From NCBI GenBank assembly GCA_020184695.1, contig JAANOX010000245.1:186001-250000 (forward strand): a DNA stretch of 64,000 bases, read 5' to 3'. Positions 5,623 through 64,000 of the stretch are shown one piece after another. The position numbers and the translations under genes are program-made. The notes under the pieces were generated by a model. It did no database searches, had not been told where the DNA came from, and saw nothing but the letters and a program-made list of their open reading frames with translations. The DNA comes from Histomonas meleagridis 2922-C6/04-290x (taxonomy: Eukaryota > Protista > Parabasalia). Position 1 is the stretch's first letter. The number at the start of each line of letters is the position of its first letter.

Positions 5623-7350
5623 ATGAATGGTTTAATGTTTGTTCTATGTCTTTTCAATATCTTAGGATATTGCAAACAAAGACCGCAAATCTATGAGTTC
5701 AATCACAGTGCACTCATAAGTCTCTTGGACAAAATCCACAATCACGATTATGATGAAATTGTATATAAAGAAGTTCAACACATAGCCAATGATGATGACG
5801 AAGAAGAAGAAGAGTATGTGTATCATTATTATCAAATTGACGATGAATATCATGAACCAGAGAAAAACTTATTTAAAATAAAAAACCCAATTAAAAGCAT
5901 TACATCAAGCATATCCCATGGACTAAAATCACTTGCTTCCACTGGTATCGCTACTATTAAATCAACAGGCAAGCAAATAGCACAAGGAGCAACTGGTACA
6001 ATAAAATCAGTGACCGGTGTTGCGTCAATAAAAACAATTCTCTCTAAAGTAAAGCCAGGAGTTTCCAAATTTAAACCAATTCTCTCTAAAGTAAAGTCAG
6101 GAGTTTCCAAATTTAAACCAATTCTCTCTAAAGTAAAGTCAGGAGTTACCAAATTTAAACCAATTCTCTCTAAAGTAAAGTCAGGAGTTACCAAATTTAA
6201 ACCAATTCTCTCTAAAGTAAAGTCAGGAGTTACCAAATTTAAACCAATTCTCTCTAAAGTAAAGTCAGGAGTTACCAAAGTCAAATCAGCAGCCTCGAAA
6301 GTAGGCAAAGTAGCTGGCAAAGTCGTCACAAGCGCTGCGAAAACTGCTGCCAAGACAGCCTCCAAAGCAACAAAGCAAACGATCAAGACAGTTAAGGAAA
6401 CTGCCAAAGCCTCAGCCAAGACAACCACATCTGCTGCGAAAGCTGCGGTCCGTATCACGCAAGCTTCGGTGCAGATCGCCACCAATCCTGGCAAAGCTGG
6501 ACAGATCATCAAAAATGTCAGCAAGGAAGTCACCAAAGATCTTAAGGAGGCAGCCGAAGCGTACAAGCCTGTCATCAGGGATGTCAAAGCATATGAATTG
6601 TATCAAGCAGGAATGGCAATCTACCAAGGAATCAAAGAGAAAGATTTCATATCAACACTTGGCAGCATTGCACAAGCTGTAGGTAGCTTTGGAGGACCAA
6701 TTGGAGCGATTACAGATAAAGCACAACAACTTTATCAACAAGGCGAAATGATCTATAAGGGAATTAAGAATGGCGATTACACACAAGTCATTAGTGGTAT
6801 TACATCGATTATCTCTATTGATGAAGTTAAGGAATTAATATCGAAGAGTGAATTACTTCAACAAGGATTAGAATATTATCAAAGAGGTTATGATATGTAT
6901 AAGAAAGGTAAACAAGTAACAGATGCAATTAAGACAGGACACTTCGGTAAAGCGATTGAAAGACTTGCAGAGTTAGGCTTAGACGTTCGTAATAATTCAT
7001 TGTATACAAAAGCAGAAGAATTATTTGATAAGGCTTGGAAATATATTATCAAGGAGAAACATTATACAAACAAGGAAAGGAGAAACTTCAATTAGGTAAG
7101 CTGCTTATGAAGCAATTAAGAAAGGTAAAGTTAACAGTGCACAGGAAGTACAGTCGGAGAACAAATAGCGCAGACAGTGACTGAGGGATACCTGAAGCTT
7201 GAAGACGCACAGGCGAAAGCTGACGCACAAATAGAGAAAAACGCTGAGGAAGTGCAGGGAAAGGCAACGAAATTGGTGACGTCAATCGACGAACTGAAGG
7301 AAATCATCGCAAAGGCGGAGGCGGACGCTGTGAAAGTGACAGCAGAATAA
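5623..7350 (+). CDS. Putative secreted protein: signal peptide, acidic segment, cationic amphipathic tandem repeats, helical C-terminus (3' end frameshifted)
   Basis: ATG 5623 MNGLMFVLCLFNILGYC; DDDEEEEEY; K/A/S/T/V-rich repeats. The ORF stops at 7095 but coding-like sequence continues in shifted frames to TAA 7348-7350 (...LKEIIAKAEADAVKVTAE*). Confidence 0.65.
6031..6282 (+). repeat. Six tandem 42-nt (14-aa) coding repeats, KPILSKVKSGV[ST]KF
   Basis: Direct inspection: period 42 nt, near-identical copies. Confidence 0.95.
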
Positions 7351-12963: not shown

Positions 12964-14670
12964 TTAATTGCTGTTTGAAATATTTTGATCAAAAAGTAAT
13001 TTAACTGTTTCTGTGTGATGATTCTCAGTTGCTATCATAAGTGCTGTCCGAAGTAATTTAAATAATTTCCAAATATTATTTTGAAATATCAAATTATAAA
13101 AATAAATATTAATTAAAACAAATAAATACCTTTAGCATTAATATCAATTCCTTCTTGTTCAAGAAGTAATATAACTATCTCTATATAACCATTTTCAGAT
13201 GCAAATATAAGTGTTGTCCGAAGTAATTTAAATAATTTCTAAATATTATTTTGAAATTCTAAATTATTAAAATAAATTATAAATAAAACAAATAAATATC
13301 TTTAGCATTAATATCAATTCCTTTTTGTTCAAGAAGTAATTTAACTATTTCTGTATGACCATTTAAAGATGCCCAAATAAGTGCTGTTCTAAATAATTTA
13401 AATAATTTCCAAGTATAAAATGTGTATTTCAAAACAATGGAATCAACTTCATTTTTAGTGTTGATATCATTTATTTTTTGTTCTAAAATATATTTAACAA
13501 GTTCAATGTTTCCCGACTTTACTGAGTAAACTAAAATATCTTTCGGAATTTGACATAATGCTCGAAAATGTTTGATAAGAATTATATTTCCTTCATTTGC
13601 TGCTTCATTTATCATATCATCATTTATTTTCATACCTTCTTGAAGCAAATAAGAAAAAATTTCATAATTACCAGATAAAATACATTTTTTACCTAATTGT
13701 TTTAATGTTTTAATTTCAGCGATTTTATTTTCATAAAGATAACTGAAAATTTCATATCGATGATATCCAAATGCAATTTCATATGCAATTTCAAAAGATG
13801 AATGATTTTGTTCACATAAATGATTAATTTCTTCATTTCCACCTGCAATTGCATATTTACCTGTGATTTCTACTTTTGCACTGTTCATAAGTAAATATTT
13901 AAAACATTTAACAGATCCAAAAAATGCTGCATAATCAATTAATGTAACATTTTCTTGATTAATAAATGAACATCTTTCATAAAGTGATGGCATAATATAT
14001 TGATTAAAATCAAAATTTGTTTGTGATGATATTTGAAATCATTTTGTGATGATATTTCTTGAAGTTTTTCGATTTCATCTTTTCGAATTATTTGCGCAAT
14101 TGCATTTGGATTGTTTCCTTCTCTAATTAATTTTTTGTGAATCTCAAAATTATTCTTCGATAGTCCTTCATAATTCTCGAAGATATCGATAATCTCTTTA
14201 GTTAAATAATATTTTTTTTCTATCATCTTCTTTCATATAATATACAAAATATGGAGTACAAATATTAGGAAAAATATTCGGATTACACAAATTATGCTCA
14301 ATCATATCGTTGATTATATGTTTTGCTTCTTTTGATACAAGGGATGAAATATACTCAATAAAAATTTTTATAATTTGTGAACTTTCATTCATTTCTGCTT
14401 CTTTTGATTGAATTCAAACTCCAAATATTATAAATAGATATAAAATTTATTACCTCGAAAAATAAATGTTGAATAAACAATATGGCAAATGAAAAAATTT
14501 ATCATACAAGGCTTAAATGTATCAAATAATTGTATTGTCTGATGAACAGATGAGTCGAGATTTTCTTCCTTTAAATGAAAAACAATTTGTTGGAGAGAAT
14601 TCAATGATTCTATGAATGGTGACTGATTGGTGATGACAGATTCACTGCTGCAAGCGACACATTCATTCAT
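12964..14670 (-). pseudogene. DUF3447 + ankyrin-repeat gene, 5' part broken into several frames; three hairpin cassettes at 13388-13450, 13218-13297 and 13048-13127
   Basis: IDYAAFFGSVKCFKYLL / YAIAGGNEEI (DUF3447-type); frameshifting internal duplication near 14030-14060; cassettes decode to N-EEGR-TAL, D-IRRR-TTL and G-NDGR-TAL; TAA 12964-12966. Confidence 0.75.
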
Positions 14671-20731: not shown

Positions 20732-21030
20732 TAAGCCAATTTAATTTATCTTAACATTTATCACAATATACTTCATATTGGAAAGGAGAGTAATTGAAAC
20801 TATTCATAAAGATAAGGTTTATCATTCTGTTCTGGGGTGGAAATTCGAGAGAAAAATTAATTCTTATTCAAAAGGAAAAGCAGCACCCAAGCACACATAC
20901 TAGAAAAAATCACTCAGTTCAAAAAACGTAAAGTAAAATAAATCAAAATTATATATAAATTTTTACTAAAAAATATCAAAAATCCGTTGATGTATTTATT
21001 TTATGAGATATAATTTGTAATTTTTATTTA

Positions 21031-22949
21031 TTAAATATTTACAATAAATTGTTCTTCTTTAAAATCTTTTGCAAATGGGTCTTCTTCAATATGTAGAATT
21101 GGTTTGCTTACTGCTAATGTTGCGTTAATTTTATTTTCGTTTGTATCTTCACTGTTAACTTCATCATTTGAAATAATCTTCTTTTTATGGTGAATATGAA
21201 TAATTAAAACAATTAACAATACAATAATAATAACAACAATAACAAACAAAACGCAAACAATGATAATTATTGTTATTATTTTATTATCATTCGAACCATT
21301 TTCATTTACTTGAAAAATCATAAAGAAATCAGAATAATAACTAATATATGTTGAATAATATATTATTACATATTCATAGTCAATAAAATCTGTGGTTATA
21401 TATGTAATTATTGATGAAATAAATGAAATGGAATATGTTTTAGATATTAATGAAATATTAACAATTGTTTTTGTATACGACAATAAATAATCTAAAACAA
21501 ATGAATGAGAAATAGTTACATCTTTTCCAAATGACTTTATAAATGTATTTGATTTTGTATATGTGTTGGGGTTAGTATATGTATTAGAATTAGTATATGT
21601 ATTAGAGTTAGTATATGTATTAGAGTTAGTATATGTGTTCGATTGGGAAAACGTTAATGATGAAATTGGTAAACAGTCGTTAAATGTTTCCTTTGTGATA
21701 TCAAAATCACCAAATGTTTGATTTTTATATGATTCTGTTACCATAACTTCTATATCATATGATTGAGTAAAAGCGCCTTGCATAAATACTGGCTCTATTT
21801 CTCCTAAAAAGTATATACATTTAAGAGAAGAACACCCATCAAATGCATAAGCTTCAATAATTTGAACATTTTTTCCGATGAATAGTGTGGACAATTTTGT
21901 ACACCCGCGGAACATATTAGTACCAATTGATGTAACTTCATTCGATATCGAAAATGAAATCAAATTTCCACAATCACTAAATGCATATTTTCCAATACTT
22001 AAAACATTTTCACAATTTTTAATATATTCCAAGTTTTTTGCTTCATGAAAAGCAAATTCTCCAATAATAGTAACAAATGATGGAATTTCATGAAATATAT
22101 TTCGCCTTCTTTATTGGGTGGATAATGAAGAATTGTTGTGAAATTTTTATTATACATAATGCCATCATTATTTAGATTACTGAAATTTAAGTTATTTTTT
22201 GATACATTATAAAAACTAATATTATAACATAAGAAAAAAGCATCTACTCCAATACTTGTAACTGATGCTGGAATTGTGAAATTTTTCAGTTTTTCACATG
22301 CATAAAATGCACTACTTCCAATTGTTTGTACATTTGCACCAATATTGACTAATTCTAAATTAGAGCAATAATAAAATGCAGAATCTCCAATTTTAGTAAC
22401 TTAATTACCTATATCAATTGAAACTAATGAAAATCTTGAAAAATCATAATTTTGGATTTCAGTAATACCATTTTCAATTATAATATGTATTTTCATTTCT
22501 TTATATAAATCTCTTGTTTCATATTCATCAGAATTTGTGATTATAAGTGTCGATGTTGATTGATTAAAATATTCAAACGTGGAATTAAAAAACAAAATAA
22601 ACTGATAAGAATGAGAAAAACTCTTATTTATTAAAGAGTTTTCTTTTGTTTTTATTCCTTTTGGCGTTAAAAATTTGAAAACAAAAAAGAATGAAATTAA
22701 AAAAATAATTTCTAAAAGATAACTCGAAAAAATATATAAGATAGAATTTTGAGAAACACCATATTTTTGTAGTATTGGTCTAACATTATTATGTAATAAA
22801 ATATCTAAATCAGAAACATTATTTGAAATTGATTTAATTTTGATATTATTTTTATTACATACAAAAAAATTTAATCGCAATGTATGATTTATAATCAGAA
22901 CTTCATGAGAAACCATTCCAATTTGAAGATATATGAAAAACATCACCAA
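21031..22949 (-). pseudogene. BspA-like (TpLRR) surface protein with SNTYTN stalk and C-terminal TM; one in-frame stop and one frameshift
   Basis: VTKIGDSAFYYC, VQTIGSSAFYAC, SIGKYAFSDC repeats; TAA at 22401-22403 in frame; frameshift near 22090; TM IIIIVCVLFVIVVIIIVLLIVLII. Confidence 0.75.
21545..21640 (-). repeat. 18-nt coding tandem repeat (SNTYTN)n
   Basis: SNTYTNSNTYTNSNTYTNSNTYTNPNTYTKSNTF in the ORF. Confidence 0.85.
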
Positions 22950-25854: not shown

Positions 25855-28800
25855 TCATAATGAAAGATTAGTAAATTTTTCACATTCTAAAAGTAATTTC
25901 TTTGATTTCATTGTGATCTTTACTATTTGCATACATGGGTGCTGTTGCAAATAATTTCCAAATTATAGGGGAAACGGAAATGTTTTATCTTAAATATAAT
26001 AGAATCGAAATAAAAGATTTTAATTATTTTCTTTTAGGTTTACTTATTGTAGTAGTTACCTTTGTTCTTTATCACCCATTAACATCTTTCAATCCATTCT
26101 TCGAAAACTTTTGCTAAAGTATCCTTTGAAATTTCACTCGAAATTTCAGTTATTTTATCGTGCAATTTTGTAAAATCATCAAATTTTTCTATATCTAGTT
26201 GATTTTTTAAAAAACCAAATAAAAAGAAATATGAAGGAGCAAAATCTGGTAAATATGGCGGTCGTGGAGCTATTTTAGAATCATTGTCTCCCAAAAATTT
26301 AGTTGAAGCATTCGACATATGGGGAGATGCATTATCGAAATGTAAATAATATGGGTCTTCATGGAGCTTTTTTCTTCGTGGAAATACAATTTGCTTCAGA
26401 GGTTTAATTATATTATTAATTAATTATGTTGATTTAAAAAATTATTCATAATTATTTATAGAATCAACTATAAAGAATCGATCAATATTCCAAAAGATAA
26501 TTACCATATATTTTATCGTGTCAATTTTTGTATCGATAATTTCAGGTAAATTATTTTCTGATAGTGACCACATATGCTCATGATCATATGATAAAAATAA
26601 CCGAGATTTATCCCCAGTTATGATTCTATGGAAACCTTCTCTCTTGCTAACTTCTAAGATATCAAGGAGCTCAGTTGTATTTCGCACTTTTTCTTCTCCT
26701 CTTTCACACGTCAGTTCATATGGAACCACTTATAAATTATATTAATGGAAGCCTAATTTATTGAGGTGATCATTTATGGTGGATCGTGGTATAGACAAGG
26801 CTTCGTTTATTGTATATGTTGAATGAAATGGTTCCATTTCGAGTGCAGCCAAAATTTTTGAATAAATGAAATCAAGAACAGGTCTGTCTGGACTTTGAAT
26901 ATTTGTTATTCCAGATCTCCCTAATCTAAATTGATGCACCCAATATTTTATGGTATTAATATTGAGTGCATCTTGGTGATAAACATCATCTAACTCTTGT
27001 TTAATTTGGCTGAGTTTAAAGCCTTTTCTTTTCAGAAAAAATATGACTGCTCTTTGTTCGACTTCCATAGAAATGAAAAACGTTTAAAAAGAATGACAAT
27101 ATGTAAGTTTATTTTTGACATTTTCTTGATATATAAAATATTTCTGATCTCAAAAATTATATCATTATTATTACAATCTCTTGTATTTTTATATATATAA
27201 TAATTATTAAAAAAAATAAAAGGATCATATTTAGGATAAAACATTTTTGTCTACCCTATATTTTGAATTTCCAAATCATTAAAATAAATTTCGAATAAAA
27301 CAAATAAATATCTTTAGCGTTAATATCAATTCCTTCTTGTTCGAGAAGTAATTTAACTATTTCTGTATGGCCATTTTCAGATGCTATCATTAGTGCTGTA
27401 TTAAATAATTTAAATAATTTCCAAATATTATTTTGAAATATCAAATTATTAAAATAAATATTAAATAAAACAAATAAATAGTTTTAGCGTTAATATCAAT
27501 TCCTTCTTGTTCAAGAAGCAATTTAACTATTTCTGTATAACCTTCATCAGATGCTCTAATAAGTGCTGTTCTAAATAATTTAAATAATTTCCAAATATTA
27601 TTTTGAATTTCCAAATTATTAAAACAAATGTTAAATAAAACAAATAAATAGTTTTAGCGTTAATATCAATTCCTTCTTGTTCAAGAAGTAATTTAACAAT
27701 TTCTGTATGGCCATTCTCAGATGCTATCATAAGTGCTGTATTAAATAATTTAAATAATTTCCAAATATTATTTTGGAATAGAAATTTTGAATAAAATAAA
27801 TAAATATCTTTAGCGTTAATATCAATTCCATCTTGTTCAAGAAGTAATTTAACTATTTCTGTATAACCATTTCTAGATGCATGTATAAGTGCTGTCCAAA
27901 ATATTATAAATAATTTCCAAATATTATTTTGAAATATGAAATTATTAAAATAAATAATATTTTTAGCATTAATATCAATTCCTTCTTGTTCGAGAAGTAA
28001 TTTAACTATTTCTGTATAACCATTTGCAGATGCTTCCATAAGTGCTGTCCATAATATTTTAAATAATTTCCAAATATTATTTTGAAATATAAAATTATTA
28101 AAACAAATATTAAATAAAACAAATAAATAGTTTTAGCATTGATGTCAATTCCTACTTGTTCGAGAAGTAATTTAACTATTTCTGTATGACCATTTTCAGA
28201 TGCAAAAATAAGTGCTGTCCATAATATTTTAAATAATTTCCAAATATTATTTTGAAATAAGAAATTATTATAACAAATATTAAATAAAACAAGTAAATAG
28301 TTTTAGCATTGATGTCAATTCCTACTTGTTCAAGAAGTAATTTAACAATTTCTGTATGACCATTTGAAGATGCTCTCATAAGTGCTGTTTTAAATAATTT
28401 AAATAATTTCCAAATATTATTTTGAAATATAAAATTATTAAAATTAATATCAAATAAAACAAATAAATATTTTTAGCATTAACTTCAATTCCTTCTTGTT
28501 CAAGAAGTAATTTAACTATTTCTGTATGACCATTTGAAGATGCCAATATAAGTGCTGTATTAAATAATTTAAATAATTTCCAAATATTATTTTGAAATAT
28601 AAAATTATTAAAATTAATATCAAATAAAACAAATAAATATTTTTAGCATTAACTTCAATTCCTTCTTGTTCAAGAAGTAATTTAACTATTTCTGTATGAC
28701 CATTTGAAGATGCCAATATAAGTGCTGTATTAAATAATTTAAATAATTTCCAAATATTATTTTGAAATATAAAATTATTAAAATTAATATCAAATAAAAC

Positions 28801-30440
28801 AAATAAATATTTTTAGCATTAACATCAATTCCTACTTGTTCAAAAAGTAATTTAACAATTTCTGTATGACCATTTGAAGATGCCAATATAAGTGCTGTAT
28901 TAAATAATTTAAATAATTTCCAAACATTTTTTTGGAATATTAAATTATTAAAATAAATTTCGAATAAAACAAATAAATATCTTTAGTGTTAATATCAATT
29001 CCTTCTTGTTCGAGAAGTAATTTAACTATTTCTGTATGACCTTTTTCGGATGCCAATATAAGTTCTGTTTTAAATATTTTAAATAATTTCCAAATATTAT
29101 TTTGAAATATCAAATTATTAAAATTAATATCAAATAAAACAAATAAATATTTTTAGCATTAACTTCAATTCCTTCTTGTTCAAGAAGTAATTTAACTATT
29201 TCTGTATGGCCATTTTCAGATGCTATCATAAGTGCTGTATTAAATAATTTAAATAATTTCCAAATATTATTTTGAAATATTATATTATTAATATCAATAT
29301 TATATAAAATTTAGAAATATCTTTAGCATTAACATAAAATCCTTTTTGATTTAGAATGTATGTAACAAGTTCAATGTTTCCTGAAAATGAAGCAAAAACT
29401 AAAATATTTTCTGGAAGTTGATTATTTTTAAGGAAATATTTTACAAGAAAAATATTTCCGATTTTTGCTGCTTCATTAATAATATTTTCATTAATTTTCA
29501 TTCCTTCATTTTCTAAATATGCAAAAATTTCATAATTAAAATATGAAACACATATTACTCCTAATTCTTCTAATTTTTTAATTTTTTCTAATTTGTTTTC
29601 ATAAATATACTTAAAGACATCATTTCGATGAAACTTGATTGCAGCTTCACATGCATTATCAAATGTTGAATGATTTTGTTCACATAAATGAATAATTTCT
29701 TCATTTCCACCTGCAACTGCATATTTACCTGCATTTTTTACTTTTGCGCCATTCATAAGTAAATATTTAAAACATTTAACTGAAGAAAAAAATGCTGCAT
29801 AATCAATTAATGTAATCCGAAATTGATTAATGAATGAACATCTTTCATAAATTGATTTTCGAATTATTTGATTAAAATCAAAATTTGTTTGTGTTGATAT
29901 TTCTTGAAGTTTTTCTACTTCATCATTTAGAATTATTTTTGCGATTTCATTTGGATTGTGTCCTTCTTTAATTAATTGCTTATGGAGTACAAGATCATCT
30001 TCATCTGATATATCTTCATTAATATGAGCAAAAAATGGTTCGCGTATATTTTGGATGAATTTTGTTTCAAGCAAATTATACTCAATCATGTAATTAAGAA
30101 AATAAAATGACTCTTGTGTTTTTTTCTTAAGAAGAAATTGAGAAAATGTATTTATTATTTTTGTGTTGATTTTATTATTTTCTTCATATTTTTCAATCTC
30201 TTGTAATAATCTCAAATATATATCAAAATTATTACTATCAATTAGAAGAGATGTATATATCATTCGGGTTAGAATGATGTCATAAGACATTGGATATTTT
30301 TTACAAAACTTGCTGATAATAAAATTTGATGATTGAGCAAAATTATCTTTATTCAAACCAAAGATTATGTTTTCGAAAGTTGTAAATGTTTCCCATTCGT
30401 TTTGAAATTTCTGGTTTGTTGTTGTTTGCTTTTGGTGCAT
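25855..30440 (-). CDS. DUF3447 + 13 ankyrin-repeat gene; every repeat junction carries a (17+3)x4 cassette; last junction disrupted by a mariner
   Basis: ORF 29280-30440 ends just after NAKDI. All twelve 90-nt ankyrin segments from 29238 to 27310 are open. A capping repeat TAPMYANSKDHNEIKKLLLECEKFTNLSL* lies beyond the transposon (TGA 25855-25857). Confidence 0.8.
25966..27258 (-). mobile_element. Decayed mariner (Tc1/mariner) element, 1293 bp, TA target duplication
   Basis: Imperfect TIRs TAGGGGAAACGGAAATGTTTTATCTTAAATAT vs TAGGGTAGACAAAAATGTTTTATCCTAAATAT, flanked by TA (25964-25965, 27259-27260). Transposase pieces: Mos1-like HTH (26742-27068), IITGDK, DNASPH and PPYLPDFAPS. Confidence 0.9.
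27259..29318 (-). repeat. 170-bp tandem array (90-nt ankyrin segment + 80-nt cassette), 12 complete cassettes
   Basis: Period 170 bp except one unit of 153 bp and one of 156 bp. Confidence 0.95.
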
Positions 30441-33380: not shown

Positions 33381-33629
33381 AAGATTAGCAACTGATGCTG
33401 ATTTATTTCTAAACACTAGCTTAATATATTGTAAATTTTAATTGTTTTCGTTGGATTCGGTCTTTACAGAAAGAAATTATTTTGTCTTTTTCCAAGAACA
33501 AAAGCAGTTCACCAAAAAAATTTAATTTTTTTTTTGTAAAAATTTATACGAAATTTAAAAAACATTTGTATGATTCAAAACATCAAATGTTATATTTTTA
33601 TTGAGATTTCTTATGATATATTTTAATAT

Positions 33630-33960
33630 CTAGAGAATTAATATCAATGTTTTGTTCAAGAAGAATTTGAACTATTTCTATAGCTGTTATAAGTGGTGCT
33701 TTAATTATTAGTTATAAATTCCAAATTTATTTAATTTATATATATATATATAAATTATATGTTTTAATTAAGGATTTATAATGACAATATCAATTCCTTC
33801 TTGCTCAAGAAACAATTTAACTATTATTGATTGATTTTTTTCATGCCATTAAAATTACCAAATAAAATAATTTCCAAATATTATTTTGAAACTCCAAATT
33901 AACACATTAAACGATTACAAAATAAAAGAAGTAAACATGTTTAATATCAATACCTTCTTA
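33630..33960 (-). pseudogene. Decayed ankyrin-array remnant with partly eroded cassette
   Basis: EGIDI and VKLFLEQEGIDI fragments; GTTTCAAAATAATATTT-GGA (intact 17-mer + Gly) followed by a 13-nt shortened element. Confidence 0.6.
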
Positions 33961-34031
33961 AGCAAAATATCAGATACCGTTACGTAACCACAAAATTATA
34001 CGAAGCAATTTATTTTTTCATTTATATTTTC

Positions 34032-34982
34032 TTACTTATTTTTATTTCTCATTTTAATTCTTTCTTCATTATGTTTCCTTTCCATTTCTTCTCTTTCCAA
34101 TTTATGTAATTCCAACAATTCCATATATTCCAAGTCATTTAAAGGTTCATCAAAATCAACTTTTTCTTGTCCAAATTCTTTTATTAACGAATGGTTTAAA
34201 AGTTGTTCTGCCGAAGGGCGATCATTGGCAGGCAACAAACACAAAGTTATAAAGTCAGCGATGACTGGGTCATTCACCTTAGACAAAGAAAAAGGTAATT
34301 GCCCAGACATAAGCTTATTTATTATAGACTTTATATTCTCACATTCACAATAAGGCTCTTCTCCAGTAACAATATCTAAAATGCACATGCCTAAAGACCA
34401 AATATCGGATTTAGTAGTTTTTTCATTAGTTAGATCTTCTGGTGCTGTATATTTTATGTTTCCAACCAAACGATTTTGATTAGAATAGAAAAGTATATCT
34501 GAAGTAAAATCAATTTTCACAATTTTTTTAAGAGGATCAAATTTAATATCACGACATTCTAAGGTCCCATGAATAATTGATGGATTGTGAGTATGAATAT
34601 AATTAAGGCATTCAAGTATTTGCTTACATATATTGGAAACTAAAGATCTTGTTGGTGAATGAACAAAATCCATGATATAAGTGTGTGTGAGTTCTTTAAC
34701 TAAAATTAATGATTTTCGATTTTTAAGTGTCAAGATATCAAAAATCCGTAAAATATTCGGAATAGAAAGTTCTGTTAAAAATTTAATCTTTTCATATATG
34801 TTATTAAAATTGATTTCGTCGGAGAATCGGTCAAAAAAGAATTCTCTTATTTCAACTTCAACATTATTTTCTTTATCATATGCTGAATATATAGGCCCAG
34901 TAACAGGACAGGAAATTCGTTCAATTCGTTTATATTTACTTTTTAGATATTTAGGTAAATAGAAGCTTTGTGTCACACTCAT
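34032..34982 (-). CDS. WNK-like protein kinase, probably a pseudokinase
   Basis: APE, DIWSLGMC, GEEPYCEC and GQLPFSLSKVNDP are WNK-like; catalytic loop HGTLECRDI and DFT replace HRD/DFG. Confidence 0.75.
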   Translation of the reverse strand: MSVTQSFYLPKYLKSKYKRIERISCPVTGPIYSAYDKENNVEVEIREFFFDRFSDEINFNNIYEKIKFLTELSIPNILRIFDILTLKNRKSLILVKELTHTYIMDFVHSPTRSLVSNICKQILECLNYIHTHNPSIIHGTLECRDIKFDPLKKIVKIDFTSDILFYSNQNRLVGNIKYTAPEDLTNEKTTKSDIWSLGMCILDIVTGEEPYCECENIKSIINKLMSGQLPFSLSKVNDPVIADFITLCLLPANDRPSAEQLLNHSLIKEFGQEKVDFDEPLNDLEYMELLELHKLEREEMERKHNEERIKMRNKNK

Positions 34983-44124: not shown

Positions 44125-45495
44125 TTGCTATCGAAGAAGAGCAAATCCATTGAAGCTTCAATGGAAGAAAAGGAAAAAAATACAAATGAATGGGAAACTT
44201 TAAAAAGAATTGAACAAATAGTATTTAACTTAAGTATTGAAAATATTAATGATTTCGTATCTTCGGTTAATAATATATTTGATGATAAATATTTATACTC
44301 TTTTAATCTAATTATTAGTCAAATGATATATTTATCATTTGCGGCCGGAACGAGTAATTTTGATATATATTTAAATTTCATGAAGGAAATTGAAAAAATT
44401 GAAAAATCTCAAAATAAAATTTTTGATATATTTGTACAGACAATAAAAAAATAAGAATACTCATGAATCATATTATTTACTAGAAAAAATGTTTGAAAAA
44501 AACATAATTGATTTGAAAGTAGTAAAAAATTTTAAAGTTCCATATTTTTTTCATTATGCTTCAGATGATGAAATCAAAGAAATTATTCAACAAGAAGATA
44601 TGTATCAGAATATCAAAAATATTGAAAAACTTAAAATGAATGATTGGGAACTTCATAAACAATTAATTAAAGAAGGAATTAATCCTAATGACTTGGCAAA
44701 AGTAATTCGAAACGATGATTTAGAAAAGCTTCAAGAAATATCATCACAAAATAATTTTGATTTTAACCAAACTATTGATCCATCAATTTATGAAAGATAT
44801 TCATTTGTTAATGAACGTAGTGTTTCATTAATTGATTATGCAGCATATTTTGGATCGATTAAATGTTTTAAATATTTACATTTAAATAATGCTTTTATAA
44901 ACAACACAGGTAAATATGCAATTGCAGGTGGAAATCTTGAAATCATTCATTTGTGCGAACAAAATCGTTCATTATTCGAAGAATCATATGAAATAGCAAT
45001 AAGATATCATCGAAATGATATCTTTAAATATCTTTATGAAAATGAAATCATTAAACTTAATAATTTAGAAGAATATGGAAAGAAATGTGTTTTATATCAT
45101 AATTATGAAATTTTATCATACTTGCAAAATCAAGGTTTGGAAATTAATGCTTCGATTTTAGATGAAATCGCAAGAATTGGAAATATATTTCTTCTTAAAT
45201 ATTTTCTTCAAGAAAATCAAATTCCTAAAAATTATTTGTTTTTGTCTGCTAAAGCAGGAAATGTTGATATTATTAAAAATATTTTTGAACAAGAAGGAAT
45301 TGATGTTAATGCTCAAGATGATTGTTTGTCTTATAAAATACTTATTTAAATAATTTTGGGTTTTGTATAAATGTTTGGAAATTGTTTACTTTATTTCGCA
45401 CTGCAGATAAGCATGCATCGCGCTGGAGGAGAGGAGGATACTGGATTAAAAATCTAATACTTGAAAAAATGGATGAGCAAAGAAAACCCCAATGA
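44125..45495 (+). CDS. DUF3447-ankyrin gene with a single cassette (45320-45399) and a unique C-terminus; homopolymer frameshift at 44445-44451
   Basis: DUF3447 motifs; cassette decodes NAQD-NWGR-TAD, then the frame stays open for 31 codons to TGA 45493-45495. Confidence 0.75.
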
Positions 45496-45730
45496 ATTGT
45501 ATTATCCTCAAAGAAAATATGAACACTTCTTACTTTTAACAATTTGAATAAATGTTGAATAAGTATATTTCTTTGGAATTAATTTAATTTTTGTTCAAGA
45601 AGTAATTTTACTATTTCATCATTATATTCATTTTTTATAAAAATTCTGAAGATTTATGTGATATTTCACAATTAAATCGAATCTGAAATATCATAAAAAC
45701 TAGAAAATTCCACATATAATTTATATTTAT

Positions 45731-51370: not shown

Positions 51371-52729
51371 GTGACAACCTGTTACGAACGTTTAAAATTA
51401 GAAATGAATGAACAAGAAGAAATTAATCATCTCATTCATCAAAATAGAAAATTAAAAGCAAAAATCATTGAACAAGCCTATGAATATAAAGAAGAAAAAG
51501 CAAGATTAAAAGCAATTAATAAATCGCTTAGGGAAGAATATGAAAGATTGCAAATTAGAAACCAAGAAACCATTGAAGAACTTACATCTAGAATAGCAGC
51601 ACTTGAAAGTGAACTTAATAGAACACAATACGAAACAAATTACATAACTTCAAGTGGAAGTTTTAACTACAATAGAAAAATTTCTTTTGCTGAACTAGAA
51701 GCAGAAGGTGCAAGGCTAGCAGAAGAGACAAACAGAATTATTCGTATGTGTTCAACTCCAAATACATCATATGATTTTTATACCACAACTCCTACAAAAC
51801 CAAGAATTCACCGAACTCATGCACCATCAATTCCCTCTTATCCACAATCTGCCAAAAAGATTTCAAAGCATCGGAAAAAGAAGAGATTAAATGATCATTT
51901 CATTGAACCAAATAATGAAAAAATCAAAACACAACCACCAAAACTCCAATCAGATCTCAGCAGCACATCAAAATATAGCACATCTAGTATCCCTATATCT
52001 CCTAGGAAACATGATTCTTCGGTCTTACATGAAAAAAGGGATGCTCAAACACCCACAAAACATCGAAAGCTAAAAACGCAGCCCAAAGAGGAAAATTATA
52101 AGGTAGAAGAAACAAAGAAACAAATTAAATCCGACCCAGAAAAAATCGACATGAAACCAATTCAAAAAGAAATAACCGAATTGAAAAAACCGATTCAAAA
52201 ATGTGAAAAACCAGAAAAACCTATTCAAAAAAATGAGAAACCGGAAAAACCGATTCAAAAAGAGCAGCCTTCCCAGAAACAAGAACTCAAAGACAGCACA
52301 GTTAAGAGCGTTGTGAGTTTCGAGACTTCTTCACAAAATGATCCATTTGACCCATTGAAAATATCATTCGAAGAAAACAGCACTATAGAAAAAGAAAAAT
52401 CTGATATCCCAACTCGAAGCAATCCACCTCCGGCAGAAACAGTTCAAGCTCAAAGCAGTGGATGGGGCTCAGAGTTTGATGGTGGAAGCATCGATATGAA
52501 TCTTGATTTTCAAGAAAGCATCATTGGTGAACCTAAAAAAGCGGATGAAAAGCTTGAAGAACGGGCTAAGCCCAAAGAGGAAGATAAAAAGATTGAGGTT
52601 TCTGATCACGAAAATGATAAAAAAGAAACTCCGAATTTTACTTTCAATGATGAAGAACATAGTTCATTTGAAATTAACCCGGACGATATTGTTTTCGATT
52701 TTGGAGATGGCGTTGATCCATTTGAATAA
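51371..52729 (+). CDS. Hypothetical protein (N-terminal coiled coil, disordered K/E/P-rich tail)
   Basis: 452-aa ORF; short EKPEKPIQK repeats. Confidence 0.7.
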   Translation: MTTCYERLKLEMNEQEEINHLIHQNRKLKAKIIEQAYEYKEEKARLKAINKSLREEYERLQIRNQETIEELTSRIAALESELNRTQYETNYITSSGSFNYNRKISFAELEAEGARLAEETNRIIRMCSTPNTSYDFYTTTPTKPRIHRTHAPSIPSYPQSAKKISKHRKKKRLNDHFIEPNNEKIKTQPPKLQSDLSSTSKYSTSSIPISPRKHDSSVLHEKRDAQTPTKHRKLKTQPKEENYKVEETKKQIKSDPEKIDMKPIQKEITELKKPIQKCEKPEKPIQKNEKPEKPIQKEQPSQKQELKDSTVKSVVSFETSSQNDPFDPLKISFEENSTIEKEKSDIPTRSNPPPAETVQAQSSGWGSEFDGGSIDMNLDFQESIIGEPKKADEKLEERAKPKEEDKKIEVSDHENDKKETPNFTFNDEEHSSFEINPDDIVFDFGDGVDPFE

Positions 52730-52821
52730 AGCAAGAATTAATTTTTGTGTAAAAACAGAAAACATTTTGAGTGGTGTGTTCATTGAAAAAGTACTGCAAC
52801 GTCTTTTCATTTTTTTGGAAA

Positions 52822-55800
52822 ATGGGACAAAACCAAAGTCAGGCTCCAGTCCAAAATAAAAAGCCTTCTTCGAAACAAACGAAGGAAAGCACACCACGGA
52901 AAGATCCAGAAATGCGTTTAAGTGCAGAATATATCAAAAGTCTTCAAAATCTTGAACAACGAATTTTTGAATTAAATGAAGAAAATGTTGAACAAATTGC
53001 GGATGGTGTCATGGAATTATTTAGTGATAAGTTCCCATGTACATCCAATCTTATTGTTTGTAAATTAATATTTTCATCTTTTGTTACTCAAAAACTTGAT
53101 TTTAATCTTTATTTCAGATTAATAAAAACAATTGATTCAAAAGAACAAGACATAATAAAAACGAATTATAAATTACTTGATATATTTACATGGTATTTAC
53201 TTCATTCTGAGACACAAGAATCTTATTATTTACTTGAAATGTTAATTGAACAACGATTACTTGATCCAAAATTTGTTAAGAATAAAAAGTCATTACATTT
53301 TGCACATTATAAAACGAGAGAAGAAATTAATATCTTAAAAGATAATGCACCATTTCATGAACAATTCTTTTCTGTTTATGACGATCTTTCACATGATAAT
53401 TGGAAAATGCATTTACAATTTATTCATGAAGGAACTAATCCATTAGAAATTGCTAAAATTATTCGTAAAGATGACGTCGCAAAACTCAAAGAAATGGCCG
53501 AATTTAACTTCGATCAAAATCAAATAATTGAACCTTCACTTTATGAAAGATGTTCTTTTATTAATAAAACATATGAAAAAATAACATTAATGGATTACGC
53601 CGCATTTTTCGGCGCAATCGAATGTTTTAAATTTTTAATGGAATGTGATTGTAACTTAGAAAACTCAGCAAAATATGCTGTAGCTGGTGGACATCATGAA
53701 ATTGTTCGACTTTGTGAAAAAGGTCATGCAACATTTAAAGATACTTATGAGACAGCAATTGAATTTCATCAAAATAATATTTTTCATTATTTATATCAAA
53801 ATCAAATTATTAAAGTTGGCGATTTAACTCAATTAGGAAAGAAATGTATTCAAAGCGGAAATTATACAATTTTGGAGTTTTTAATTCAAGAAGGAATGAA
53901 AGTTGATGATTCAATAATTGTTGAATTAATAAAAGCTGGAAATTTGTTCTTACTTGATCAAGGTCTTAGTTCAAAGCATTTCCCTAAAAATGCTATAGTT
54001 TTAGCAACAAAATCAGGAAATATTGAACTTGTTAAATATCTTATTGGGAAATATAGTTTTGATATCAATGAAACAGATATTTAATTTTTTTGATTTTATG
54101 TTTATTGATTTGTTTTAGTGTTTAAATATATTTTTTGGAATTTATTTAAATATTTTAAAACTGCACTTATTTATGCATCTGAAAATGATCTTTTCGAAAT
54201 TGTCGAATTACTTTTAGAACAAAAAGAAATCAACATTAATGCAAAAAGTATTTCTATGGTTTTATTTAATGTTTATTTAAACTTTTTTATGTTTTAATGA
54301 ATTATTTGGAATTTATTTCTATTTAATGAATCATCAATTTATTTTGCAAGTGCAAATGGAAATATTGAAAACGTCGAAATGTTACTTAAACAAAATGGTA
54401 TTGACGTAAGTCAAAGTACTGTTTACTTTTTTTATCTAATATTCATTAAAATAATTTAATGTTTTAACGTAATTTTTGGTATTTATTTAATTTGTTTTGG
54501 TCACCACTTATGAGGGCATCTGAAAATGGACATTATGATGCAGTTAAATTACTTCTTAAACAAGGTGATGTTGACTATAATGCTATAAATATTTTTTTGT
54601 TCTATTTAATATTTATTTTAATATTTTAAAGTTCAAATTTTATATTTGGTATTTCTTTAAGTTATTTGAATCTGCACTTTTACTTGCATGTAAATTTGGA
54701 TATAAAAAAATTGTTAAATTACTTCTTTCACAAAATGAAATTTATGTAAATCCACAAGATATTAATTTAGTATAATTGCTGTTTATCACAGTTTCATGAT
54801 ATTTCATTTTAGTATATGGAAATTATTTAAAAAATATATGACACCGCTTATGTATGCATCTCAATCAGGTTTCAAAAAGATCGCCAATAAACTTCTTAAA
54901 AGAAAAGATATTGATATAAATGAATCAAATGTCTTTCTTTTTTATTTAAAGATTATTTTAATCACTTTATGTTTTAAACAAATATTTGGTATTTGTCACA
55001 ATTTTTTGAAACAGCATTAATGTTAGCAGCATCATTTAATAGCGTTGAAATTGCTGGATCACTTCTTGAAAAAGATAACATCGATTTCAATGCTAAAGAT
55101 ATTTTTTAAATAATTTTGATGTTCATATTTTTAAGTTGAAATTTCATAAATTCATTTGAAAATTATTTTTAATGTTTAGAACAGCTCTTATTTGTGCAGC
55201 TCAATATGGGCATGCTGAGATTTTTAAACTACTTCTTCAACAAAATGGAATTGATATTAATGTTCAAAATATTATAAAATTATATTTAAAATTTGATTTA
55301 AAGATTTCATGTTTTAAAATTCATTTTGGTAATTATATAAATTATTTTATACACCACTTATTTTAGCAGCTGCTGATAATTATATTGATGTCATGGAATT
55401 ACTTCTTCCGCAACATGGAATTGAAATAAATACTCAAAATGTTTAATATATTTATAAGAAATATGTTTTCTTAATTTTGGATTTAATAATTTTATTTGGA
55501 ACTTATTTTATATTTTTGAAACAGCTATAATATGTGCAACTAGAAATAATCGCGTTGATGCTGTTAGATTACTTCTTGAACAAGAAGATATTGATTTTAA
55601 TTCTAATGATATAATTTTAAGTTATTTAATGATGATTTTAATTATTTAGAATTTTTTGATTGAGTTTGGAATTTAATATAATGTCATAATACCTCAATTT
55701 TAATTGCTGCTAAAAATAATTGTGAAGAAATAGTTAAATTACTTGTCCAGAAAAAAGGACTTGATATCACTGTGAAAAATGTTCAAACATTTCATTCGAC

Positions 55801-55929
55801 GTTTTTTATACTCATTTGAAATATATTAAGAAAATTTGGTGTTAATTTAAGAGTTTTAAAGTAGCAATGTCTTATGCAGTTGCAAATGAAAATGAAGAAA
55901 TCATTGATTTACTCAAGGGAGTTGATTAA
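52822..55929 (+). CDS. DUF3447 + 11 ankyrin-repeat protein (~785 aa after removing 44 elements of 17/18 nt); possible N-myristoylation
   Basis: ATG 52822 MGQNQS; raw ORF stops at 54084; ten 90-nt ankyrin segments plus a 69-nt last segment are all open; decoded hairpins are canonical; TAA 55927-55929. Confidence 0.85.
54079..55860 (+). other. Eleven diverged 80/81-nt cassettes, each 4 x (17-nt skipped segment + 1 codon)
   Basis: Spacer 80 nt in 9 of 11 and 81 nt in 2; GGA/GGT at the third micro-codon in 10 of 11; no stops in 44 micro-codons. Confidence 0.9.
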
Positions 55930-56045
55930 ATAGCTAAAAGAAGAAGTTAAAATTCTCTCAATAAAAATTCAATCAAAAATTTTTTCACATTCTCATGAAA
56001 AGTAAATAGAAAAAACACATATTCTTTAAATATATACAAAGTACA

Positions 56046-56909
56046 TTATCTTCTATGATTTGTAACAGAGGATTTTGATTGATATTTCTTCACATTTGCT
56101 ATTATATCGTTTAGAAGTGGAAGCACTGGAAAAGGACATTGATATTTTGAACAATTGTCTTTCATTATTTCACTGAATAATGAATATGCTTCTTTAGCAG
56201 ATTTTCTTCCACCAACTTTATTAATATTTATTACTGCATTATGAAATATTGCAATTAATCTTACATCTCTGTTATTGTTGTTTTGTATATGTTTTTCATC
56301 AGTTACTTCTTTTGCTCTTTCCTTTTCAGCACGAAAAGATTCTGACATTTGCAAAAGTTCTAATCGTTGCTGATCAATTAATTTACTTCTTGATTCAATA
56401 AAGTTTTCTTCAATTTTATTTAATCGCTCCTCGACATTCTTTTGAGCGATTGTTCTTGATAAATCTTTTAATTCCAATGCCTTTTCATAGTTACCTAAAA
56501 TTGCTTCTTTTTTAGCTGATTCAAGAATTTTAAGTTGTTGAGGAACTCCTCTTTTATTTTGCTTCATTTTATTTTCTGTATATTCCTCTTCAAGTGCAGA
56601 GAGAGATTCAAGATGCTTTTTTTGAATCAATTGGAATTTTTTATGGTATTTTAATTTGATATCTTGCAAATTTTGTTGATAATATTTTTCTATTTCTTTT
56701 GTATTTTCAATGTGATTCTGAAGGTGTTTTTCAAGCTCGTCTTCAAAGGCATCATAAATACGACTAATTTCTTCTCTTTTTTCAAATAAATGAATTTCTT
56801 GAATTCTTTTGTCAATTCTTTTAACTTCATCAAAATTAAATCTGTCTAGTTCTTTTTTCCTTTTTGTTCTAAGTTGAGCAATTTCTTCATTCTGTTCTCT
56901 TGATTTCAT
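56046..56909 (-). CDS. Hypothetical coiled-coil protein
   Basis: 287-aa E/K-rich ORF with YEKALELKD helix. Confidence 0.7.
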   Translation of the reverse strand: MKSREQNEEIAQLRTKRKKELDRFNFDEVKRIDKRIQEIHLFEKREEISRIYDAFEDELEKHLQNHIENTKEIEKYYQQNLQDIKLKYHKKFQLIQKKHLESLSALEEEYTENKMKQNKRGVPQQLKILESAKKEAILGNYEKALELKDLSRTIAQKNVEERLNKIEENFIESRSKLIDQQRLELLQMSESFRAEKERAKEVTDEKHIQNNNNRDVRLIAIFHNAVININKVGGRKSAKEAYSLFSEIMKDNCSKYQCPFPVLPLLNDIIANVKKYQSKSSVTNHRR

Positions 56910-63040: not shown

Positions 63041-64000
63041 TTATAAAATATCTTTAGCATTAATATCAATTCCTTCTTGTTCAAGAAGTAATTTAACTAT
63101 TTCTGTATGACCATCTCTAGATGCTAAAATAAGTGCTGTATTAAATAATTTAAATAAATTCCAAATATTATTTTGAAATATCAAATTATTAAAATAAATA
63201 TCAAATAAAACAAATAAATATCTTTAGCATTAATATTAATTCCTTCTTGTTCAAGAAGTAATTGAACTATTTCTGTATTATCATTCCAAGATGCATTAAT
63301 AAGTGCTGTTCCAAATAATTTAAATAATTTTCAAATATTACTTTGAAATAACAAACTATTAAAATAAATTATAAATAAAACAAATAAATATCTTTAGCAT
63401 TAATATCAATTCCTTCTTGTTCAAGAAGTAATTTAACTATTTCTGTATGACCTTTTGAAGATGCTATCATAAATGCTGTTTTAAATAATATAAATAATTT
63501 CCAAATATTATTTTGAATTTCCAAATTATTAAAATAAATATCAAATAAAACAAATAAATATCTTTAGCATTAATATTAATTCCTTCTTGTTCAAGAAGTA
63601 ATTGAACTATTTCTGTATTATCATTCCAAGATGCATTAATAAGTGCTGTTCCAAATAATTTAAATAATTTTCAAATATTACTTTGAAATAACAAACTATT
63701 AAAATAAATTATAAATAAAACAAATAAATATCTTTAGCATTAATATCAATTCCTTCTTGTTCAAGAAGTAATTTAACTATTTCTGTATGACCTTTTGAAG
63801 ATGCTAACATAAGTGCTGTATAAAATATTTTAAATAATTTCCAAATATTATTTTGAAATATTAAATTATTAAAATAAATATCAAATATAACAAATAAATA
63901 TCTTTAACATTAATATCAATTCCTTCTTGTTTTAAATCGTATTCAACAAGTTCAATATTTCTTGATCCTGCTGAAAATACCAATATATCATGCGGAATTG
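63041..64000 (-). CDS. 3' part of a DUF3447-ankyrin gene running in from the window end; 170-bp array with 5 cassettes
   Basis: Exact 170-bp period (TCTTTA at 63051, 63221, 63391, 63561, 63731, 63901); cassettes decode DNGY, IVEG, DGGK, IVEG, DDGN; ends NAKDIL* (TAA 63041-63043). Confidence 0.85.

Follow-up and report, generated by a model that had tools for sequence, protein, structure and literature searches.

Seventeen-nucleotide elements strung around single codons in a DUF3447-ankyrin gene of Histomonas meleagridis are absent from its processed RNA

How can a gene whose reading frame is broken every 170 nucleotides (nt) encode a regular repeat protein? This question is raised by a gene located at positions 52822-55929 (forward strand) of a 64,000-nt stretch of the genome of Histomonas meleagridis 2922-C6/04-290x (GenBank assembly GCA_020184695.1, contig JAANOX010000245.1, positions 186,001 to 250,000), hereafter called the window, whose G+C content is 29.0%, a value that agrees with the published genomes of this species (PMC8529796), as do the two DNA samples of 2021. 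The gene, delimited by Pfam matches, a spliced model and the ends of RNA contigs, encodes a DUF3447 domain and 11-12 ankyrin repeats, a pairing that is typical of parabasalids. An open frame extending from 52771 to 54078 is the source of the Pfam matches (DUF3447, E 2.3e-10; Ank_2, E 2e-11). From 54079 onward, each 170-nt unit consists of a 90-nt coding piece (T-A-L...D-I-N-A-K-D) and, after it, of a spacer of about 80 nt in which every frame contains stops. Our analysis indicates that these spacers are made of 44 inserts of 17 or 18 nt, which are transcribed and then excised at the RNA level.

Parsing of the spacers, starting from their right end, divides 54079-55860 into 11 cassettes (J1 to J11) of four elements each. 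Forty-two of the 44 elements are 17 nt long and two are 18 nt long, which bears out the fixed length claimed in an earlier note made from the sequence alone. Neighboring elements of a cassette are exactly one codon apart, and the order is invariant: element-codon-element-codon-element-GGN-element-codon, the third codon being mostly Gly. Cassette J1 (54079-54156, forward strand as for all cassettes of this gene) includes elements at 54079-54096, 54100-54116, 54120-54136 and 54140-54156 and the codons TAT, AGT, GGA and AAA (YSGK once joined). J2 (54250-54327) includes elements at 54250-54267, 54271-54287, 54291-54307 and 54311-54327 (codons NYGE). The two 18-mers are the first elements of these two cassettes. 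J3 (54421-54497) carries elements at 54421-54437, 54441-54457, 54461-54477 and 54481-54497 (NNGW), and J4 (54591-54667) carries elements at 54591-54607, 54611-54627, 54631-54647 and 54651-54667 (NKGE). They are followed by J5 (54761-54837, ADGM), J6 (54931-55007, KYGE), J7 (55101-55177, DEER, the sole cassette of the gene without Gly as third codon), J8 (55271-55347, KHGY), J9 (55441-55517, EWGE), J10 (55611-55687, NRGN) and J11 (55781-55857, DEGK).

This 4x(17+3) architecture is non-random, since a region that has stops in every frame becomes one open reading frame (ORF) of 785 amino acids (aa) once the 44 elements are deleted, and since the same architecture recurs at four other loci of the window and in six metagenome contigs. 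The coding sequence obtained extends from an ATG at 52822 to a TAA at 55927-55929, which is the sole stop of the spliced model. The joined codons, together with the flanking D/N and T/S, spell the canonical ankyrin hairpin D-x-x-G-x-T, and the motif D-x-x-G-x-T-x-L is found every 33-34 aa, in addition to the Pfam matches to ankyrin repeats and DUF3447. Gly is the third codon in 35 of the 39 distinct cassettes found at all loci, and the other three codons are widely variable. Ankyrin binding surfaces vary at these hairpin positions. The closest named relative of the protein is TRFO_30244 from Tritrichomonas foetus (30% identity), whose uninterrupted 34-aa repeats align without gap with five consecutive repeats of the processed protein. 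The T. foetus homologue is devoid of cassettes and is encoded by one continuous ORF in the genome (contig L007, 501-2588). The processed protein itself was not found in the protein database searched. The best matches were ORFs from ENA metagenomes that are 49% identical and end at their first cassette.

The presence of the elements in DNA and RNA was compared using Logan contigs aligned to 52600-56400: contigs from the RNA runs X3 and X5, from an older RNA run (X9) and from a DNA run obtained from a second sample (X2). These contigs are undirected, and the kinds of the runs (RNA or DNA) are presumed. The X2 DNA contigs run colinearly with the window and show neither gaps nor other letters (rec4, 54013-54183; rec5, 54156-54531; rec6, 54503-56001). 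J1, for instance, is spanned without gap by rec4. Furthermore, rec6 is one unbranched path of 1499 nt over 9 cassettes. A cassette-free gene copy with identical exons would break such a path at every exon edge, which argues against its existence. DNA-level elimination, for which the earlier note had suggested a check, is therefore not seen. In addition, these contigs cover both 18-mers without gap or mismatch, and one 18-mer between 54157 and 54498 is required by the RNA arithmetic given below. Hence, the 18-mers are real and not the assembly errors that the earlier note had suspected.

By contrast with the 170 or 171 nt of the genome, the repeat period of the RNA contig X5 rec18 (1205 nt, depth 21) is exactly 102 nt throughout 10 repeats. 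Its matches to the window include 54157-54250 (record positions 76-169), 54497-54591 (279-373), 55347-55441 (789-883, as predicted for J8) and 55857-55967 (1095-1205). The fourth hairpin codons located at 54157, 54498, 55348 and 55858 are thus found at record positions 76, 280, 790 and 1096. Ten repeats occupy 1701 nt in DNA versus 1020 nt in RNA, the 681 nt that are gone being 39x17+18. Between 54157 and 54498, 137 nt are removed, i.e. 18+7x17. The ends of the RNA pieces are the predicted exon ends: a piece begins exactly at 54157, after J1, and one-base overruns equal the first or last base of the predicted neighboring codon, as for the piece ending at 54591, whose last base equals the first one of the next codon. 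J5 lies within the 102-nt period of this contig. After J11, the match resumes at 55857/8 in both X5 rec18 and X3 rec14 and extends into the 3' untranslated region. The RNA contigs of the gene start at 52833/52834 and end at 55967-55979, and RNA depth is lower in the spacer upstream of the gene, as transcripts would give.

Unprocessed and partly processed RNAs are also detected. The contig X3 rec11 is colinear with the genome through J2, which is unprocessed. Its match then breaks off at 54420 and is taken up again at 54497/8, the two parts being 9 nt (three codons) apart. J5 and J6 are unprocessed in X3 rec12 and rec13 (54901-55036 for the latter), which have a depth of about 4-9, while the processed X3 rec14 has a depth of 30. 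The content in 31-mers sampled from 53500-56000 points in the same direction: the share found is 0.51-0.53 in RNA runs X5-X7 and 0.63 in X3, versus 0.95-1.00 in DNA runs, and the share computed for purely processed RNA is 0.51. Moreover, paralogous RNA contig ends read ...AAAGAT AAT AAT GGA AAA ACAGCACTT, whereas the DNA contigs enter the first element there. These contigs, which have no locus assignment, fit the removal model. Therefore, the elements are transcribed and then excised from RNA, and unprocessed forms and forms processed cassette by cassette coexist with the processed one. We regard excision at the RNA level as highly probable. The four-way 4x17 split within a cassette is indicated by the removal arithmetic, by the ends of the pieces and by coding logic.

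Several simpler readings of the spacers conflict with these data. Removal of a single non-canonical intron of about 80 nt per cassette would also restore the frame. However, RNA keeps 102 nt per repeat, not 90, X3 rec11 has 9 nt between the exons that flank J3, and the T. foetus repeats need four extra residues. Translation of the spacers with one frameshift per repeat was rejected, since the spacers have stops in all frames in this gene and RNA lacks them. In younger units found elsewhere in the window, the spacer is open in frame and would encode a hydrophobic stretch. Programmed DNA elimination similar to that of internal eliminated sequences was discarded too: no element-free DNA was found and the DNA contigs from two samples are colinear. 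Kinetoplastid-type U-deletion editing removes U only, while the elements also contain G and C, besides 30% of A.

Which machinery could remove such elements? Their sequences give few of the expected signals. As the earlier note had stated, they all have a purine first (44/44), the first three bases being ATT (19), GTT (15), AAT (3), ATA (3), GAT (2), GTC (1) and ACT (1). Its description of the ends holds in part. Most are T-rich, the last two bases being TT in 36 elements, AT in 5, CT in 1, AA in 1 and TC in 1, and none of the 44 ends with AG or AC, but the TA ending that it listed does not occur in this gene and is found at other loci only. It had also rightly noticed the absence of GT-AG ends: in registers that preserve the product, neither GT..AG nor AT..AC occurs in any of the 44 elements, and an AG end is possible in 1 only. 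Canonical GT-AG junctions in another register, which the note had named as a finding that would tell against it, do not exist. GT-AG or AT-AC introns in a shifted register are thus rejected, all the more as AG does not occur in J2 and J3, two cassettes verified in RNA. AG is entirely missing from 21 of the 39 cassettes. A U12-type AT-AC intron (5' ATATCC, 3' AC/YAC) was discarded in the same way (0 AT..AC in any register), and AT...AC removal over the whole cassette breaks the frame. The claimed lack of an ACTAAC-type branch point was corroborated, since ACTAAC, TCTAAC, CTAAC and ACACAG have 0 occurrences each in 54079-55860, which also dismisses a trichomonad intron with the 3' motif (A/T)CTAAC-ACACAG.

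To describe the elements more broadly, 111 distinct ones were pooled from the five window loci and from the ENA contigs L001 and L003-L006. Their consensus is R1 T2 T3 T4 A5 ... A14 T15 T16 T17. Among the 111, position 1 is A in 73 and G in 35, position 2 is T in 89, position 3 is T in 100, position 4 is T in 93 and position 5 is A in 67; at the other end, position 14 is A in 82, position 15 is T in 92, position 16 is T in 96 and position 17 is T in 102. Positions 5 and 14 are the only internal ones with near-universal As. The bases that flank the elements are unconstrained. The junctions of 35 of the 44 elements have an ambiguity of 1-2 nt and 9 junctions have no common base at all. No conserved secondary structure of the cassettes was found: RNAalifold gives an empty consensus for 37 cassettes, and the minimum free energy (MFE) has a mean z-score of -0.07. 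Likewise, an Rfam scan of the window matched no small nuclear RNA and no other known family of RNAs. The idea of a length ruler put forward in the earlier note appears to be a reasonable inference.

The reading that we favor, with somewhat better than even confidence, is that the 17-mers are micro-introns cut from pre-messenger RNA (pre-mRNA) by a divergent, length-limited spliceosome. The elements would be cut out and their flanks rejoined exactly, and four single codons (x, x, Gly, x) would be stitched between 90-nt exons to give the beta-hairpin D-x-x-G-x-T. Recognition would involve a 5' R-U-U-U-A, a 3' A-U-U-U and a strict length of 17 nt, 18 being tolerated. The elements would probably be removed one after another, since a 3-nt exon is too small for two machines at once. 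The geometry of the spliceosome would set the length, as in other organisms with minimal introns. More speculatively, the purine at +1 and the U at -1 could pair and replace the usual G-G contact.

To our knowledge, the spliceosome is the only nuclear machine that excises internal mRNA segments on this scale. This is a first reason to favor it. Furthermore, most elements begin with AT or GT (86 of 109 unique elements), their 17/18 length profile mirrors the 15/16 profile of the ciliate Stentor, and parabasalid spliceosomes have a fixed distance between branch and 3' cut and accept introns of 23 nt that are mostly poly-T. Overall, the chances of a divergent spliceosome are roughly balanced, and it is favored over a dedicated nuclease and ligase, which we hold to be possible but doubtful. 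If RNA-level excision is taken as given, a spliceosomal process becomes mildly probable and a non-spliceosomal one would be the minority expectation.

Comparison with known introns gives arguments for and against. Introns from Stentor coeruleus are AU-rich and measure 15 nt (92.8%) or 16 nt (7.2%), a length set by spliceosome geometry (PMC9505925), and those from the Bigelowiella natans nucleomorph measure 18-21 nt (PMC12316389 for the 18-nt figure). The elements described here resemble these minimal introns by their removal at the RNA level, their very short and near-invariant length, their AU-richness and their U-rich interior. Like those of Stentor, they have one dominant length and a rare n+1 class (42x17 + 2x18, about 95% and 5%). 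However, the introns from Stentor and Bigelowiella are GU..AG, have a branch A at a fixed position 10 and are found in all kinds of genes, whereas the elements have 0 AG ends, are grouped by four around single codons and belong to one gene family. Trichomonad introns have GT-AG ends and are either of type A (56-196 nt) or of type B (23-25 nt, 23 nt being the minimum in the latest census), the latter being largely poly-T between motifs, with a constant spacing between branch site and 3' end (PMC12316389). The elements thus resemble type B introns, belonging to the same phylum, in being short and poly-T-rich, but lack the GT...(A/T)CTAAC...AG that defines trichomonad introns. Furthermore, Trichomonas vaginalis has about 63 active introns in total, versus 44 elements in this gene alone. 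Other introns that do not follow GT-AG are known. In Fritillaria borealis, non-canonical introns of normal size, mostly AG-AC or AG-AT, are removed by the major-type spliceosome, and euglenid nonconventional introns have a variable length and ends joined by base pairing. Both are removed at the RNA level without GT-AG, as are the elements, which differ by their fixed length and absence of conserved pairing. Single-codon exons joined by splicing are also known in animals and plants, a 3-nt microexon being reported in Drosophila (PMC8042270), but these lie between long canonical introns and not between 17-nt elements in arrays of four.

Several observations weigh against a spliceosomal removal of micro-introns. 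None of the 109 unique elements ends with AG or is GT..AG, A is the first base in two thirds of the elements, and no ACTAAC-like motif is found. In class-1 elements, A is limited to positions 1, 5 and 14, and a branch A would thus be 3 nt from the 3' end. Furthermore, only one gene family was found to carry the elements, a selectivity hardly expected from a general machine. As to the micro-intron reading in general, the microexons of the RNA are known as piece coordinates with one flanking base each and not by their letters. As expected for U2-type introns, the elements are removed from pre-mRNA with detectable precursors, but they do not have GT (or GC)..AG ends. They are intron-like in their behavior, yet lack what defines every intron class with which they were compared.

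The best surviving alternative to a divergent spliceosome, to be viewed as tentative, is a dedicated non-spliceosomal endonuclease associated with an RNA ligase, which would cut both ends, measure about 17 nt and reseal the RNA, as in the splicing of transfer RNAs (tRNAs) or of HAC1/XBP1. A protein or guide RNA might recognize the whole element. The fixed length, the absence of spliceosomal signals and the restriction to one gene family are consistent with such a system, as is the conservation of the whole 17-mer, which is about that of framework codons. In addition, each of the four cassette positions has its own consensus, retained in relatives that share 66-79% of DNA identity. However, the empty RNAalifold consensus rules out a bulge-helix-bulge (BHB) or an IRE1-type stem-loop, and a 3-nt exon is unable to form the exon helices used by such enzymes. 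The tRNA/BHB-type and IRE1-type introns were thus rejected, no conserved helix-bulge or stem-loop being found and the MFE z-scores being about 0. Moreover, no candidate enzyme or guide RNA was found, Rfam giving 0 matches in the window. A length-measuring system of RNA excision and ligation, guided by protein or RNA and working around single-codon exons, is conceivable at a similarly low level of confidence; its elements could perhaps also be recombination handles that shuffle binding-surface codons among repeats and paralogues.

Far less support exists for the idea that the RNA contigs come from another template, which would be either a gene copy devoid of cassettes or somatic DNA freed of the elements by elimination. 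The lack of direction of the contigs and the presumed run kinds leave some room for it, but this explanation is very improbable given the unbranched 1499-nt contig of the second DNA sample, the absence of left-out letters listed for the DNA run, and the RNA contigs that start and stop at the gene ends with a depth falling in the upstream spacer. We know of no split between germline and soma in parabasalids, which counts against it too. It is scarcely believable that reverse transcription or assembly created the pattern by template switching over short repeats: the elements are T-rich and mutually similar and most of their junctions are ambiguous, but an artifact would have to account for 40 removals in a row, all exact and in frame, in contigs of two libraries that are deeper than the unprocessed form, as well as for the junctions without common base, and single codons spelling a canonical hairpin would not be its product. 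Finally, a ribosome hop over 17 nt or a skipping RNA polymerase, both in line with the absence of splice signals, has almost no credit left, since a hop, including the one cued by the nascent peptide that the earlier note had envisaged, needs the element in the mRNA, from which it is already missing, and matching take-off and landing codons, which are lacking, while the unprocessed RNA (X3 rec11-13) argues against obligatory skipping.

Translational bypass elements were also considered as a class. Those from T4 gene 60 and the Magnusiomyces mitochondrial byps stay in mRNA and have matched take-off and landing codons. Like byps, the elements are short, numerous, frame-breaking inserts in coding sequences that are absent from the protein. 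Unlike them, they are absent from RNA (102 nt per repeat versus 170 nt in DNA), and their codons are unmatched.

Four other loci of the window carry cassettes. A short paralogue on the forward strand has a lone cassette (45320-45396; codons NWGR) in an ORF that begins at 44489, followed by a unique C-terminus of 32 aa. In the frame obtained after removal (44489-45500), this C-terminus is rich in Arg and Trp and a TGA is found near 45496. Three cassettes are located on the reverse strand at 13048-13467, the first of which (at 13467) lacks element 1. Also on the reverse strand, a five-cassette array with a 340-nt higher-order duplication extends over 63140-63899. Its units starting from 63819 and 63479 are identical and those starting from 63649 and 63309 are nearly so, a pattern that points to a recent duplication of two-repeat blocks, cassettes included. 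The consensuses of elements 1, 2 and 4 agree at 13-14 of 17 positions (for instance at 63899-63820, reverse strand). The cassette thus resembles a diverged tandem array of a 20-nt unit made of an element and a codon, which gives a clue to how it arose.

The fourth locus, a young tandem array of 170-nt units with near-identical elements (27400-29318, reverse strand), includes units of 153 nt and 156 nt (27739-28048). The former lacks exactly element 1. In the latter, a 14-nt deletion partly fuses elements 2 and 3, and the length is a multiple of three after three removals. Both are thus in frame under the removal rule. The share of the 31-mers of this array is 0.40-0.47 in RNA runs and 0.74-0.78 in DNA runs, a difference that agrees in direction but is too noisy for proof. 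Pairwise comparison of 15 young 170-nt units gives a difference per site of 0.054 for the elements, 0.124 for the exons, 0.127 for the Gly codon and 0.541 for the three variable codons. Hence, the elements are about 10 times better conserved than the codons between them.

In the window, the elements occur solely in DUF3447-ankyrin genes. A scan of the window for lone 17-mers whose removal joins ORFs gave ankyrin matches only, plus chance frame overlaps at 6644, 24878, 22034 and 13971. A BspA-like leucine-rich-repeat gene lies at about 21000-22400 (reverse strand) and has two frames open side by side near 22034, the source of the false match scored there. The region 33500-34100 (reverse strand) contains ankyrin-like pieces, cassette-like T-rich blocks, an (AT)n run and stops in all frames, and is probably a pseudogene, i.e. 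a decayed member of the DUF3447-ankyrin family. Beyond the window, ENA metagenome contigs encode N-terminal domains that are 42-49% identical and carry the same cassettes. In JGI metagenomes, an exact 27-nt cassette word had 0 matches and distant DUF3447 relatives are devoid of cassettes. Runs labelled chicken gut metagenome contain 5-7% of the 31-mers of the 27400-29320 array, which indicates that poultry gut samples contain this organism or one closely related to it. In the ENA contig L001 (4380-5279, reverse strand), and also in L002, a DDE_Tnp_IS1595 ORF is located 2.4 kb downstream of a cassette-bearing ankyrin gene. Between the transposase ORF and the ankyrin gene, the region 2100-3000 of L001 is much less AT-rich than the remainder.

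No description of such elements emerged from searches of 8.4 million papers and preprints, which dealt with 17-nt introns, 3-nt exons and introns of parabasalids or of Histomonas together with ankyrin. If confirmed at the read level, they would be the first intervening sequences of nuclear mRNA that combine a near-minimal fixed length, the absence of GT-AG or AT-AC and serial 3-nt exons. If they are spliceosomal, a spliceosome could do without the two most conserved nucleotides of introns and join a downstream exon of 3 nt, and the minimal substrate of splicing would have to be redefined. If they are not, eukaryotes would have another way to cut and rejoin mRNA. The published annotation of Histomonas has at most one intron per gene (PMC8529796). 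Since gene finders are unable to model cassettes, of which many more are spread over the DUF3447-ankyrin family, annotations probably present a large ankyrin family of this parasite as truncated ORFs or pseudogenes. Moreover, the elements are located exactly on the hairpin that binds targets and are far better conserved than the codons that they separate, which suggests a link with the diversification of the family or with its regulation.

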